In this document: in pieces, positions 32,675 through 62,568 of the stretch
Layout: each line of letters opens with the position of its first letter
Position numbering within the stretch: the first letter of the stretch is position 1
Source: Octopus sinensis
Lineage: Eukaryota
Assembly: GCF_006345805.1 (NCBI RefSeq)
Contig: NC_043011.1
Span: 25,308,464-25,372,463, forward strand
DNA length: 64,000 nucleotides
Reading direction: 5' to 3'
The notes under the pieces: model-generated
Told to the model about the DNA's origin: nothing
Seen by the model: the letters and a program-made list of their open reading frames with translations, nothing else
Database searches by the model: none
Program-made: the position numbers and the translations under genes

Positions 32675-32722
32675 ATGGCAGAAAAGATGTGGGATAATTT
32701 ACTCCAATGTATATTTTTACAG
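32675..32722 (+). CDS. Cys-rich secreted protein, first coding exon (signal peptide part 1)
   Basis: MAEKMWDNLLQCIFLQ followed by CAG|gtaatt (phase 0). In-frame TGA lies just upstream of the ATG. Joins in frame to 35404 to give a continuous hydrophobic signal peptide. The link to downstream exons is inferred. Confidence 0.6.
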
Positions 32723-33997
32723 GTAATTACTGCAATTATTGTACAGATAACACTGTAACAATTTTTTTTGTTACTCCCTATTTGCTTCTATCAAGAAATC
32801 AAAGGAAATGCTTTTGTGACCTGGACATCAATGCTTTGAAACTGACTTATTTTCTCATTATATTTCAGACAGATATTCAGTGCTGAGTTGCTGAAGCAAA
32901 AATATTGATATAGCAAATATTCTGCTCAATACCACAAATTTGTTTGTAAGTTGCTTGACCGTAAACACTTGAGTATGTCCATTAGTGGCTGACAATATAT
33001 GCTTCTCTTATCATGAGCAGGAGCAGTTGGGGAGCATCATAGTGATGTGTTGAGAGGGATTCTTTTGGATTTGAATAAATATCATAACAAAAGCAAAGTT
33101 TGAAGGAAATATTAGCCATTTTTCATATTTTCTAGAGGTAAGCAAATAGGAAATAAGAGTTGCTACTCAAGGACAAAAATCGTGTTACACATTGTAATTA
33201 TTTCTTAATCTTCTTTAAATTAGTGGCATAGTAAAAGTTTCCAGTGCCTGAGGGTTGGGTTGTAAAATCACTTCTAGTGCTCCCACCAAGACAGGTTTGA
33301 TAGATCCAGAGGAAATGTTGTGTGCCTTTATACCTGAAGCTGGAGTTGCCTGACCTTTTCTCATTTTCTCACTTGTCCTCTGGTTTATATTCATAACAAA
33401 TATATTTTTATCTTTTAATTGTTTTAGTGATTTAACTGTGGCCATACAAGGGCACCACCTTGAAGGGCTTGAGTCATGCAAATTGACCCTAAGCCTATTT
33501 TCATTTTGTTTTTAAAGCCTGGTACTTATTTTATTGAACTTTTTTGTCGAATTGCTAATTTACTGGGGCATAAACACACCAACACTGGTTGTCAAGTGGT
33601 GGTGGTGGGGGACAAACACAGACACAAAGACACACATACATAAAAATATACATATACATACATACATATACATATATATAAATACATATATATATATATA
33701 TATAATGGGCTTTCAGTTTCTATCTGCCAAATCCACTCACTAGACATTAGTTGCCTTGAGGCTATAGTAGACAACACTTGCCCAAGGTGCCACATAGTGG
33801 GGTTGAACCCAGAACCATGTGGTTGGTAAGCAAGCTTCTTACCACACAGTCATGGTTATTTCTATTTTATGTTTTTTTTTATAAAATTTTTTCTGCCTTC
33901 CAGGGTGACCATCACCCTGGGAGGAAACTTTTCCTTAGACCAGAGAATTGAACTGAAAAAGCTTGTAACAGGATCAAGGGCCAGGTGATAGAGTTAA

Positions 33998-34213
33998 CCT
34001 TTTAGAATTTAAACCAGCCACATCCAGCTCAAATATTCTGTTTTATGTTCACACTGACTAGATCTGGCTTCTTACACCTACCTTACAATGTCGTTATAAA
34101 AATAAACAATCACATCATCAAATTATCAAAGTCATGAGATAATGCATGGTTAATCCAAAACAATGTGAATAGATAAGCATTATATTTGAGAGAGTAATCT
34201 GAATGCTAATGGC
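33998..34213 (+). mobile_element. piggyBac-like MITE, same family as 21124
   Basis: TTAA flanks; colinear homology to 21124-21343. Confidence 0.75.
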
Positions 34214-35403
34214 TTAAACTAGGTAACAAAGTAAGTGTTAACAATAGTTATGGACTTATTTGTACAGATATAGTCCATACAATAAGCCTTTGCACAAATT
34301 TCATAATCTACACACTTTTATTGGCAAGGGTTGGGTTTATTTGAGATTTTCATTAAAGGCATTTCCACAAAATTCCACACAACTGGATCAAATCTTGAAA
34401 CTGGAACTACATATTCTGGAGCTAATTCCTTAATTAGCTGATCATATTTGCACTTAAGCTGAAACAACGGAAGAAAAAATGTAGATGAGTGATTTTTAAT
34501 CAGGGTACTGTTATATCTTAGTGATGGCATAAAGCATTTGCTAGATATTTTGTTCCTAATATATGCACTATGCCAGAAGTTGTGTGTGTGTGTGTTGAAT
34601 AAATTGACCCTGATTTTTGACTTGCATTTGTTTTATTGATCCCCGGAAGAAGGACAAAAGGCAAAGTTTATCTTGGCGGGATTTGAATTCTTTAGTTTCT
34701 AGAAAGACTAAAGAATCCTCTCTGTTCCATGTTGTCTCCATTTGTTTAGAACAATGTAATTAAGAGAGCGAGAGTGTGTGAGATAGATACTTAGATAATA
34801 AATAGATAGATAGGTATAGAGAGAGGGAGGAAGAGAGAGAGAGAGAGAGAGAGATGAAAGAGAATAGAAATAGAAAAATGGCACAAATGGTATGATAGGA
34901 GAATAGCAATTGGAGTGAATGAGAATGATGGAAGAAGGAAGGATAGTGTGTGTGTGTGTGTGAGAGAGAGAGAGAGAGAGAGAGAGAGAGAGAGAGGAGA
35001 GAGAGAGAGAGAGAGAGAGATAGAGAGAGAGGGAGAGAAATGGAGGCAAAGAAGTCTGTCATAAACCCTAGGGCTCATAAAACTGGACCTTAACCTGGTT
35101 TCCATGGCATGGCATATCATATAAGAGATGAGATTACAACACTTACCCTGAACTGGACAAAAATCGTGTTACAGTGGGTAATTACCAAAACAAAACTAAA
35201 AAAACGCAACTAAAACAACTACCAAAACTGGTACCAAATGTTATTTTCTATATCTGACAAGATAAGGAGAATAAATTAGTTGTATGTCATCAGCCTTAGA
35301 TTGGTAAACAGAATTGGAAAAGATCAGCATTTAATGTTTTTAATCATAATGCCTAATCTTTTTTTTCTTTTATAATTTATGTATGTGTTCCTTTTCTTTA
35401 CAG

Positions 35404-35437
35404 GTTTTGTTACTATTTCCATTAATATCTGCTCAAG
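35404..35437 (+). CDS. Cys-rich secreted protein, 34-nt micro-exon (signal peptide part 2)
   Basis: Strong acceptor (ttccttttctttacag|) and donor (caag|gtaaga). Encodes VLLLFPLISAQ+G, a hydrophobic core with an I-S-A cleavage-like site; phase 0 to 1. Confidence 0.65.
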
Positions 35438-36439
35438 GTAAGAGTCCTGTATACTAATAATTACATATATAAAATACTGAATTCCTTCAATTGAGATTTC
35501 TTTCAATCTTTTTACACAAGTCTTTCCTCTACTCAGTACTTTTGAATGATATTCTGTGTAGACAGAGGCATTGTTGTGTGGTAAGAAGCTTGTAGGTGGT
35601 GGTGCTGGTGGTGAAAGAAAGAGTGTTCTTTCGAATAGTGGAGTCCTGTTCAGAAAAACATTACAATTATATCTTTTGGTGCCCCGACTTGCGACTGAGG
35701 GATTGCCTGCAGGCGGCAAGAGAATTGATAGGGGATGATTGAAGAGACTTGGTGTCTCAGTCTGGGTAAGAGGTTATTGCCTCATTTTTGTGTGTTTTTC
35801 GTTGTAGAAAATAAAAAGAAAATTTGTAATGAAAACTAAAGAAAGAGGTTTAATACCTCATTTTGTTTTTTTAAAAAGAATAATGTATTAGAGAAGCAAA
35901 AAATCGGCTGGCGTTTTTTGTCTTCTCCCATCAACATCATTTTTTTCCTCTTTTTTCATCATTCATCTCATTAATGTTTCTGTCCAATCCGCAAGCTACT
36001 CCTTGTAATGCTGTCATGGCAAATTGATGAAATAAAGAAGCTTGCTTCCCAGCCACATGGTTACAAGTTCAGTCCTCCTGCATGGCACCTTTGGCAAGTG
36101 TCTTCTGCTGTAGCCTTTGGCCAACCAAAGTCTTGTGAGTGGATTTGGCGAAGAAAGAAACCTGTCATATATGTGTGTGTATGTGTGTGCGTGCATGTGT
36201 GTGTGTGTTTGTCCCCCTACCACTGCCTCCAATCTAGCGCAGTGGATTAACACAGCTCTTAGAGGGTTGGATGAGCAAGATGTTATATAATGTCTGTTCT
36301 AGCTCTTTCTTGTTTTCATGCTCAAATTCTGTCTTGGCCTGCTTACTTAACTGGTTAACATAATCCATCAATTGGTTTGACACAACTGCCTGATACCTGG
36401 GTTGCTTTTAATGGAGCACATTTTGCTTTTTGCATTCAG

Positions 36440-36494
36440 GTCACACTTCTAGTGTGAGAATACCTTTGTTTCTTCCACCATTCAGGGATGACTT
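36440..36494 (+). CDS. Candidate linker exon of the Cys-rich gene (phase 1 to 2)
   Basis: Good acceptor (ttttgctttttgcattcag|). Reads GHTSSVRIPLFLPPFRDD(F) and bridges the phase-1 signal exon to the phase-2 acceptor at 43587. The IP..P motif resembles the A2/A3 linkers, but the donor (tt|gtagag) is weak. Confidence 0.3.
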
Positions 36495-60964: not shown

Positions 60965-61052
60965 GTAAGTTTATCCCATTTTTCACTCATTATACTAAAG
61001 AAACTCCCTATAAAATAGAAAAAAATATGAAATAATCAAAATGCATTCTTAA

Positions 61053-61272
61053 CCCTTTCGTTACTGTATTTATTTTGAGATGCTCTGTGTTTCTTTCAAT
61101 TACTTTAAATATAACAAAGAACTTAGTGAAATAACTTAGCTATCATTCAGCTAGTGTTAGGAACATAAATTGTGACTAAGGTTTGGTGGAAGATTTTAAT
61201 TGAAAACTTATGAAAACAAGACATTTGTATTTAAAACCAGAGCCAGTTTCAGCCGGGTTGGTAATGAAAGGG
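61053..61272. mobile_element. piggyBac-like MITE, second family (220 bp)
   Basis: TTAA|CCCTTTCGTTAC ... GTAATGAAAGGG|TTAA. Confidence 0.85.
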
Positions 61273-61529
61273 TTAAAGCATATATTTCTTATTTCATGAA
61301 ATTATGGTGGTGGTGGTGATGGTGGTAGGGGTTGTTGAGTACACTACTACCACCACCACCACCACCACCACCACCACCACCACCACTGGTTTCAAATTTT
61401 GGTACAAGGCCAGCAATTTTTAAAGAGAGGTGGGCAAGTTGATTACATCAACTCCAATGCTCAACTGGTTCTTATTTTATCAATCTCAAAAGGATAAAAG
61501 GTGATGTGGACCTCAGTGGAATTTGAACT

Positions 61530-61720
61530 CCTGGCCAGCCTGGTGAGGGTGCCAGTATAGTCAGCAAGGACCTGACCATGCAATAGTTTGTACTAGATTC
61601 CATATTACCTGCAGCAATCACGAGAGACTTCACAAGTGACCTGACATTGATGGAAATGATGATGAGGTTCAGAGACTCTTGTCCTGCAAAGCAAAATATC
61701 CACAGCATATAACTGTACAG
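61530..61720 (-). mobile_element. LINE APE-endonuclease N-terminal fragment
   Basis: ESLNLIIISINVRSLVKSL resembles the S/TxNVRxL start of APE domains. Confidence 0.4.
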
Positions 61721-62358
61721 AGAGCTGTCAGTTGTGCAGCAGAACCTAGCACTTACATATTATAAGAATACAAAATCTCTACTACAGTGATCACTCAGAG
61801 TACTTGGCAGGATGGTCCTGCTCATGATATTCAAGCTGCCATTAAGGCTCAATAGTTACCAGCAGAGCCGCAAGTGTAAAATATAATTTTGTCTGAGTGC
61901 ACAGTGTTCTTAGTGGTTAGTGATGGTCTTTCTTAGTCATGAGTGGACAACCATCATCATTTATGTATGTATATATGTATGTATGCATGTATGTATGTAT
62001 GTATGTATGTATGTATGTATGTATGTATGTATGTATGTATGCATGCATGCATGCATGCATGTATGTATGTATTTATGAATGTATGTATGTATGTATGTAT
62101 GTATGTATGTATGTATGTATGTATGTATGTATGTGTACGTATACGTAATATATATGAATGAATGCATGTATGTATGTGAGCATGTATGTATATATGTATG
62201 TGTGCATGTATGTATGTAATGTGTATGTATGCATGTATGTATGTATGTATGTATGTATGTGTGCATGTATATAATATGTATGAATGTATGTATGTATGTA
62301 GCACATAGACAGTTGTATGCTAACATTTTAAATTGCTTTTTAATGTTTTATGTTTCAG

Positions 62359-62568
62359 ATGAATGCAATCATGTGGTGATTCCAATACCAAAACAATTAA
62401 ATGGTTCACAACATCAGACTTTTGGCAATACAAGTCTTGAAGATAGATGTTACAGCAATGACGATTGTCCTTTCCATGCTGACTGCCAACCTCGAAGTTG
62501 CGATCTTTTCATTTGTATCTGTTCTGAAGGATATAGACAATCACCTGATAGGTCAAGATGTGTAAAAC
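62359..62568 (+). CDS. Cys-rich protein exon A3 (linker + 7-Cys module), 210 nt, phase 1-1
   Basis: tgtttcag| ... aaac|gtgaga. Encodes (N)ECNHVVIPIP...SLEDRCYSNDDCPFHADCQPRSCDLFICICSEGYRQSPDRSRCVK. The gene presumably continues beyond the window. Confidence 0.88.

Follow-up and report, generated by a model that had tools for sequence, protein, structure and literature searches.

Introduction

The proteins closest to the one described here are those built from EB modules, such as pqn-25 of Caenorhabditis elegans and the EB-repeat proteins of nematodes and insects. They have the same cysteine (Cys) framework and are likewise composed of tandem disulfide-rich extracellular modules. Our subject is a gene on the forward (+) strand of a 64,000-nucleotide stretch of Octopus sinensis DNA (contig NC_043011.1, positions 25,308,464 to 25,372,463), which we call the window. 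A reading of this stretch from its sequence alone, referred to below as the original prediction, had described a secreted Cys-rich protein built from repeated pairs of exons. Where nematode protein families have been scanned (PMC5763927), EB modules frequently occur together with Kunitz domains. A nematode interactome study based on AlphaFold models treats them as elaborations of EGF, from which they are not sharply separable (10.1101/2024.07.08.602367). The mollusc modules differ from those of the other EB proteins in that three of them (a, b, and c) are fixed as a unit of about 150 residues and 20 Cys, two exons that form a cassette encode each unit, and the protein has a predicted transmembrane (TM) anchor. 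A conserved long loop (R..T.EE) in module c is a further difference.

Membrane-tethered mucins of the MUC1, MUC4, and MUC13 type combine a type I topology with Cys-rich EGF-like modules and glycosylated low-complexity linkers. Bivalve relatives of the octopus protein resemble them in having Ser/Thr-rich regions of several hundred residues before the TM helix. The octopus protein, on the other hand, has no SEA, NIDO, AMOP, or vWD module, and in octopods the linkers, which are short, are rich in Asn/Asp or in Ser and do not form classic Pro/Thr/Ser repeats. The likeness would be one of a similar way of working, with no homology implied.

The best explanation of the locus taken whole, to which we give a probability of about 0.85, is that the gene, LOC115219958, encodes a membrane protein of EB units, that it was built by cassette duplication, that each unit is stapled by a disulfide, and that the indels disrupting the copy in the window are assembly errors.

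Gene Structure and Full-length Protein

The window contains the first seven coding exons of LOC115219958, which encode residues 1-444 of its 1095-residue product. One of these exons, B2, was used as a phmmer query against 1.84 billion representative proteins and gave 25 matches. The best was XP_036365455.1, 'fibrillin-1-like isoform X3 [Octopus sinensis]' (E 2.1e-97). Grouped with it in a 90% cluster are isoforms X1 (XP_036365453.1, 1095 residues) and X2, three models named 'uncharacterized protein LOC115219958', and fragmentary models from O. bimaculoides named 'prion-like-(Q/N-rich) domain-bearing protein 25' and 'EGF-like domain-containing protein'. The gene had been taken for unannotated, but it is present in RefSeq by automatic prediction as 'fibrillin-1-like'. 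The locus of isoform X1 (L001; O. sinensis assembly GCA_006345805.1, CM016873.1:25506333-25577162) aligns with window positions 23191-64000 at about 99%. When the exon boundaries from the window are applied to L001, the translation is exact for residues 1-444 of XP_036365453.1. A word-indexed protein search with the 417-residue product of the A and B exons gave no match, the index being insensitive to these EB proteins, and a search of the same kind with a profile of 30 units gave only one unnamed match of 169 residues. Literature searches on the accessions, 'domain-bearing protein 25', and 'EB module' found no paper that names these accessions and no functional study of these mollusc proteins.

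The signal peptide is divided between two small exons. Coding exon 1 (32675..32722, +) holds the ATG and, in 16 codons, the first half of the signal peptide. Isoform X1 begins with the same sequence, MAEKMWDNLLQCIFLQ, and translation of the gene does start from the ATG at 32675, as predicted. The exon is identical to residues 1-16 of XP_036365453.1 and to L001 10001-10048, and it ends in a phase 0 donor (CAG/gtaatt). Coding exon 2 (35404..35437, +; 34 nucleotides) supplies the remaining half of the signal peptide, VLLLFPLISAQ, and one further G. It has the acceptor ttacag/ and the donor AAG/gtaaga, passes from phase 0 to phase 1, and is identical to L001 12670-12703. It was located by tblastn of the annotated protein against the window and was missing from the earlier exon list. 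Upstream of A1 there is another in-frame ATG (43534), but it was dropped as a candidate start, as the reference protein reveals exons 1 and 2.

The other five exons alternate in the order A1-B1-A2-B2-A3 on the + strand. Their coordinates and splice sites agree with the original prediction, including the end of A3 at 62568. Exon A1 (43587..43726) encodes module a of unit 1 with seven Cys. It is 140 nucleotides long in the window and 141 in the O. sinensis reference, where its frame is open and both ends are in phase 1. Exon B1 (47445..47750; 306 nucleotides) encodes modules b and c of unit 1. Exon A2 (57357..57650; 294 nucleotides, identical to L001 35837-36130) encodes a trailing Cys of unit 1 in the motif Asn-Glu-Cys (N-E-C), a Pro/Ser/Thr/Asn-rich linker of 55 residues, and module a of unit 2. 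Exon B2 (60662..60964; 303 nucleotides, identical to L001 39140-39442) encodes modules b and c of unit 2. Exon A3 (62359..62568; 210 nucleotides) encodes the trailing Cys of unit 2, again in N-E-C, a linker of 27 residues, and module a of unit 3. The B exon that pairs with it, B3 (L001 42632-42931), lies about 100 bp past the right end of the window, which corresponds to L001 42534.

All five A and B exons have canonical splice sites (yAG/.../GTrAG), with pyrimidine-rich acceptors and GTAAG or GTGAG donors. B1, A2, B2, and A3 have lengths that are multiples of three and phase 1 at either end. The description of all five as phase-1 exons holds for these four and fails for A1 as sequenced in the window, where the 140 nucleotides lead the frame into a stop. 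Both B/A junctions in the window (2/2) read A/AT GAA TGY, and N-E-C is indeed created across the splice as had been proposed.

Beyond the right end of the window, where further repeats or a TM domain had been suggested, L001 contains the units from B3 to B5 and a TM exon. The whole gene has 17 coding exons: E1, E2, and the alternating series A1 to B4 come first, a linker exon separates B4 from A5, and B5 is followed by two small exons and by the TM and tail exons. Those from B3 onward, the TM and tail exons included, lie to the right of the window. The full product is a predicted type I membrane protein with a signal peptide, five units, a single TM helix, and a tail. An N-terminal hydrophobic peak spans residues 8-32, with likely cleavage at ISA/QV by hydropathy. 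The product is thus likely to be extracellular, as had been predicted, and its signal peptide starts at 32675. It would not be simply secreted, however, because it ends in a predicted TM helix and a tail of 25 residues (SRKKCNLFYFPSSRSNIERRNPSRL). The C-terminal hydrophobic peak covers residues 1045-1073, with the helix at about 1050-1070 and a 19-residue window hydropathy of up to 3.03, and it is followed by SRKK. Between unit 5 and the helix are a juxtamembrane segment with two Cys and a Ser-rich stalk.

Isoforms X1 and X2 (XP_036365454.1) differ only in the cytoplasmic tail, by six residues (LFYFPS). This suggests an alternative splice site at the tail exon junction.

Repeat Units and Trailing Cysteine

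The Cys spacing and the Pfam matches identify the repeats as EB modules. The spliced product of the A and B exons in the window has 417 residues, with 46 Cys in three spacings (a, 5,5,4,4,1,12; b, 5,6,4,1,11; c, 5,6,4,1,21), and it repeats with periods of 199 and 171 residues. These spacings had been given correctly for a, b, and c in general, but module c of B1 reads C-x5-W-x7-C in the window and its second Cys is missing. The alternation of A and B exons is real, since the B1 and B2 proteins, aligned end to end with a single gap, are 35% identical (E 8e-20), A1 and A3 are 51% identical (E 2e-16), and A2 and A3 are 30% identical (E 1e-11). Pfam EB (PF01683) matches the spliced product in seven stretches with 90.4 bits (E 7.7e-26), well above its gathering score of 24.3 bits, and the suggested kinship with EB and EGF-like modules is confirmed. 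The full protein scores 190.1 bits, and relatives from Argonauta, a chiton, bivalves, and snails likewise exceed the threshold. The EB framework, C-x5-C-x5/6-C-x4-C-x-C-x~11-C together with the C-x-C...C hairpin of the previous module, is present with its 8 Cys in 52 positions. Profile matches over positions 1-52 of 52 cross the boundary between modules a and b in five proteins (P0043, P0008, P0010, P0021, and P0023). A hidden Markov model built from seven modules and searched against the six-frame translation of the 64 kb found no additional exon, the next best match having E 0.17.

The full protein contains five blocks of the same design. Module a (5,5,4,4,1,12) is followed after 9 residues by module b (5,6,4-5,1,10-11), after 11 by module c (5,6-7,4,1,19-21), and after another 9 by the trailing Cys. 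Each of the five units has about 150 residues and exactly 20 Cys: seven in a, six in b, six in c, and the trailing one, with which the number becomes even. The linkers between units are variable, with lengths of 26-124 residues, and one is Asn/Asp-rich. The full protein has 29 N-x-S/T sequons, and the linkers are rich in these N-glycosylation sites.

The presence of the trailing Cys is linked to the number of Cys in module a. Among 40 scorable units of the mollusc homologues, those with seven Cys in module a (a7) have the trailing Cys in 25 cases and lack it in 4, while those with six (a6) lack it in all cases (11 without, 0 with). The trailing Cys belongs to the preceding unit, because last units keep it and first units are a7 with no Cys before them. 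It follows seven last units that have no module a after them, as well as the only unit of a single-unit snail protein (P0007, KAK6959172.1, from Biomphalaria). One chiton a6 unit has no trailing Cys although the next unit is a7. It had been proposed that the N-E-C Cys pairs with the odd Cys of module a. Covariation does connect the two, but the partner would lie in module a of the preceding unit, not in the module encoded by the same exon. We infer that a disulfide probably joins the fourth Cys of module a to the trailing Cys of its own unit, which is encoded in the next A exon.

Homologues in Other Molluscs

The gene has a 1:1 orthologue in Argonauta hians (Ahia01_000863400, 1164 residues, 59% identity). 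The orthologue has the same 17-exon layout and a downstream CRAL_TRIO neighbor as in Octopus, and its TM helix is also kept. The two proteins share 103 of 104 Cys. The proportion of nonsynonymous differences (pN) amounts to 0.19 within the units and 0.37 in the rest of the protein, and that of synonymous differences (pS) is about 0.75, at which synonymous sites are saturated. The low pN in the units relative to pS indicates strong purifying selection on the scaffold. The RefSeq isoforms, the conserved reading frame, and a pN far below pS are indirect indications that the gene is expressed and spliced. The units of the two species are orthologous one to one with 58-73% identity. Paralogous units are only 26-40% identical (14-31% without the Cys) and form two groups, units 1-3 and units 4-5.

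The family extends across the molluscs. Homologues are found in a chiton (Liolophura), in bivalves (Sinanodonta, Potamilus, Argopecten, Mizuhopecten, and Magallana), and in gastropods (Haliotis, Biomphalaria, and Candidula), and all 13 matches to exon B2 (modules b and c) that bear names are from molluscs (13/13). The protein had been considered possibly lineage-specific, with no orthologue that could be named. With the Argonauta orthologue and these homologues it proves to be mollusc-wide. Unit length is 147-154 residues in nearly all mollusc units. When 30 units from 12 proteins and four mollusc classes are aligned, 17 Cys columns are invariant, and two positions of the long loop in module c, R121 and E127, are nearly so. 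The invariant columns and the covarying pair, made up of the fourth Cys of module a and the trailing Cys at about +9, define a mollusc family of triple-EB units with the order a-b-c.

Many of the homologues have long Ser/Thr-rich, mucin-like regions and a TM helix, and one bivalve homologue has a match to Pfam Mucin-like that is below threshold. Chiton and bivalve homologues (P0004, P0008, P0010, P0021, and P0023) have the tail motif [FI]x[IL]PRP, which is often followed by a Tyr-rich stretch such as IPRPSVKYEPYYVK.

A protein that starts at the membrane could still end as a secreted matrix or coat component of the egg coat, sucker lining, or mucus, if its ectodomain were shed. This would agree with the original prediction, which had named skin, sucker, and egg coat as candidate sites. 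The juxtamembrane segment with two Cys and the Ser-rich stalk before the TM helix are compatible with shedding. The Biomphalaria homologue P0007 consists of a single unit and has no TM helix, and a relative from Haliotis has been automatically named 'integumentary mucin C.1-like'. However, the Pfam scan found no SEA or other known cleavage module, and literature searches turned up no expression or proteomic data. Shedding is an unlikely fate for the octopus protein, which we take to be membrane-anchored.

Cassette Duplication

The placement of the introns allows the units to be duplicated as whole cassettes. Exon A begins with the trailing Cys that completes the unit before it and continues with the linker and module a. 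Exon B encodes modules b and c. The cassette introns are in phase 1 in Octopus, Argonauta, and the chiton, and they lie after module a and before the trailing Cys. With phase-1 introns on both sides, whole cassettes can duplicate or drop out with the frame intact.

In the octopod lineage the duplication is old. Paralogous exons are about 58% identical in DNA. Comparison of the window units by blastn found only interspersed repeats, in both orientations, with no colinear similarity of introns or exons. This divergence, and introns that share only interspersed repeats, argue for an ancient origin, and a recent duplication in octopus was rejected since no similarity between units could be detected by blastn.

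In the chiton Liolophura sinensis, tandem duplication of the complete two-exon cassette is directly evident. Its gene (L003) has alternating A and B exons with introns placed as in octopus. Three tandem copies of a 1.73-kb A+B cassette, each with its introns, lie at L003 4073-9265 and are 94-96% identical in nucleotide sequence. The repeat is beyond the period limit of 500 in Tandem Repeats Finder, and blastn was used to find it. The triplication in this chiton paralogue points to duplication that is recent or concerted. The single-unit gene of Biomphalaria shares the A/B intron with octopus and has one additional intron between b and c. The cassette design is older than the split between chitons and cephalopods. 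With the alternating cassettes of octopus and the triplicated cassette of the chiton, tandem duplication of a two-exon unit, the central claim of the original prediction, is well founded.

Coding Indels

The coding exons of the window differ from L001 by three indels and zero substitutions in 1335 coding bases. In A1 one T is absent near 43592 (CCCTTAATA to CCCTAATA). As a result the frame from exon 2 reads G/TT CCC TAA, and the spliced coding sequence stops at codon 30 (MAEKMW...ISAQVP and stop). B1 has four additional bases (TAAT) at 47607-47610 and lacks one base near 47623. Through these two differences ENGCT becomes VIEWLY, and module c loses its second Cys. This Cys is kept in B2, B3, and Argonauta.

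The indels are most likely assembly errors, judging from their rate and kind. In about 27 kb of unique, non-repeat sequence the window and L001 differ by 48 indels and 36 substitutions, a ratio of 1.3:1, and the indels are mostly of 1 bp and biased toward deletion in the window. At these rates 2.4 indels and 1.8 substitutions are expected in the exons, where 3 and 0 are observed. Indels at the background rate, the lack of substitutions, and the predominance of 1-bp deletions in the window are the reasons for reading the three changes as consensus errors. The reference version is preferred because it is backed by Argonauta and by the paralogous units. The pattern suggests that one assembly, probably the source of the window, which is taken to be distinct from GCA_006345805.1, was poorly polished.

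The window copy might instead be a true null allele or a young pseudogene, with the deletion in A1 and the paired changes in B1 (+4 and -1) being biological. The early stop fits this view, and the two indels in B1 restore the frame as a compensated mutation would, while removing a conserved Cys. On the other hand, the rest of the coding sequence is identical to an intact reference gene, and the excess of indels over substitutions with mainly 1-bp deletions is typical of consensus errors and not of polymorphism. A null allele is distinctly improbable by comparison with assembly error.

Alternative Identities

The domain content of the full protein, in which the Pfam scan found only EB, separates it from two well-known groups of EGF-repeat proteins. 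A receptor of the MEGF10/Draper/CED-1 type, active in signalling or engulfment, would have a similar layout, as a single-pass type I membrane protein with many atypical EGF-like repeats. The chiton and bivalve tails, with their conserved PRP motif and Tyr-rich sequence, would suit such a function, and chiton relatives have been named MEGF6 and MEGF10. These names are automatic, however, and the full protein has no EMI domain and no laminin-type EGF. The tail of the octopod protein has only 25 residues and, read directly, contains neither NPxY nor YxxL. This identity was dropped on domain content, and we see very little chance that it is correct.

The RefSeq name implies a fibrillin-type secreted microfibril or extracellular-matrix protein. 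The many EGF-like repeats, the resemblance of N-E-C to the D-x-N-E-C start of calcium-binding EGF domains, weak cEGF matches of 16-17 bits, and fibrillin calcium-binding EGF fragments among the weak Foldseek matches might be taken to agree with it. Membership in the fibrillins or LTBPs can nonetheless be dismissed, since the 1095-residue protein has no TB/8-Cys (PF00683) or EGF_CA (PF07645) match and is a third the size of fibrillins, the cEGF match is below threshold (16.4 versus 26.6 bits), the predicted C-terminal TM helix occurs also in Argonauta, the N-E of N-E-C is not kept in other molluscs (DVC, WKC, VMC, and NFC) and is followed by a linker and not by an EGF domain, and the Foldseek matches have E 0.49-0.63 with template modelling scores (TM-scores) below 0.2.

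Predicted Structure and Role

Structure prediction is consistent with a compact unit. Unit 2 was modelled by AlphaFold2 with the 30-unit alignment as input. The model has a mean predicted local distance difference test score of 93.7 and a predicted template modelling score of 0.79, and it consists of short beta hairpins with a single helix at 125-130, where the conserved R..T.EE is located. A Foldseek search of the model against PDB gave nothing at E <= 0.001, and a profile search of PDB sequences with the unit gave no match at E <= 0.01. The top Foldseek matches are EGF arrays (NELL2 EGF1-6, Pfs25, Pfs28, and EMR2) with TM-scores of at most 0.3. The arrays of Pfs25/Pfs28 and NELL2 similarly place small EGF-like modules side by side on or near a membrane. 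The matches to them are weak (E 0.01-0.1), though, with no sequence relationship, and the three-module arrangement has no close solved counterpart.

A possible mechanism can be outlined from these features. Each unit would fold as a compact block of three modules, stapled shut by the long-range disulfide between the extra, fourth Cys of module a and the trailing Cys. Five such rigid, disulfide-locked blocks on flexible, N-glycosylated linkers, anchored in the membrane, would resemble rigid beads on a flexible string. The protein may then act in cell-surface adhesion or recognition or as a mucin-like barrier glycoprotein. A role of this kind is suggested by the type I topology, the mucin-like bivalve relatives, and the short octopod tail with no recognizable signalling motif. 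A more speculative proposal, which we put forward only tentatively, is that the disulfide-locked a-b-c unit (about 150 residues and 20 Cys) is a distinct, mollusc-only supradomain that folds on its own, in an ancient, undescribed family of membrane-tethered mucin-like glycoproteins that grows and shrinks by unequal crossing-over of the phase-1 cassettes, with the R..T.EE helix as a ligand or contact site.

Several points weigh against the overall explanation. The gene model is an automatic prediction, and the stop at codon 30 in the window copy, if real, would make that allele null. The proposed staple is drawn from parity and covariation. Every a6 unit in the covariation count is from one chiton species, which makes for few independent events, and the four a7 units with no trailing Cys (two in a scallop protein, one in Haliotis, and one last unit in the chiton) do not follow the pattern. 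The octopod tail is short and does not have the [FI]x[IL]PRP motif, and function may differ between the mollusc classes.

Other Features of the Window

The window is about 37% GC, dense in CA/TA microsatellites, and contains interspersed repeats. A tRNA-His(GTG) sequence (38480-38551, - strand), found by Rfam (53 bits) and ARAGORN, lies in intron 2 of the gene next to a (CA)n microsatellite. It could belong to a tRNA gene or form the head of a short interspersed nuclear element (SINE) derived from a tRNA. A SINE-like element of about 270 bp has at least six intronic copies in both orientations with 76-84% identity, three on the + strand (46859-47121, 59683-59947, and 62808-63104) and three on the - strand (48479-48712, 54529-54805, and 44131-44307). 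Reverse-transcriptase fragments from retroelements, with matches to Pfam RVT_1/zf-RVT, are found upstream of the gene (27830-29079, +) and in intron 2 (41624-41932, -). On the strand opposite to the gene, 0.8 kb upstream of its ATG, is an open reading frame of 187 residues (31278-31841, -). Its N-terminal half looks ordinary, its tail is of low complexity (Ile/Thr), and Pfam gives no match. It may be a chance reading frame or a divergent first exon.

Two neighboring gene models overlap the L001 region. A 623-residue DUF4659 gene model on the same strand spans L001 1-70830, and the EB gene would lie within its intron. A CRAL_TRIO/UBA_Pinta gene is located downstream on the opposite strand in both Octopus (L001 63415-70830) and Argonauta (L004 20128-20924), which is conserved synteny.

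Significance

The analysis corrects a misleading automatic name, since the product called 'fibrillin-1-like' is an EB-repeat membrane protein. The three coding indels are a practical warning that the indel error rate of the source assembly is enough to break gene models. Surface proteins of EB or EGF repeats that arise by duplication of phase-1 exons are already known as a kind, while the three-module unit is tidy, conserved, and previously undescribed. A mollusc-wide family of uncharacterized surface glycoproteins has now gained a clean definition of its domains and exons. It provides a textbook-quality case of a protein that has grown as its symmetric phase-1 exon cassette was duplicated, a process that is old in octopods and ongoing in the chiton.

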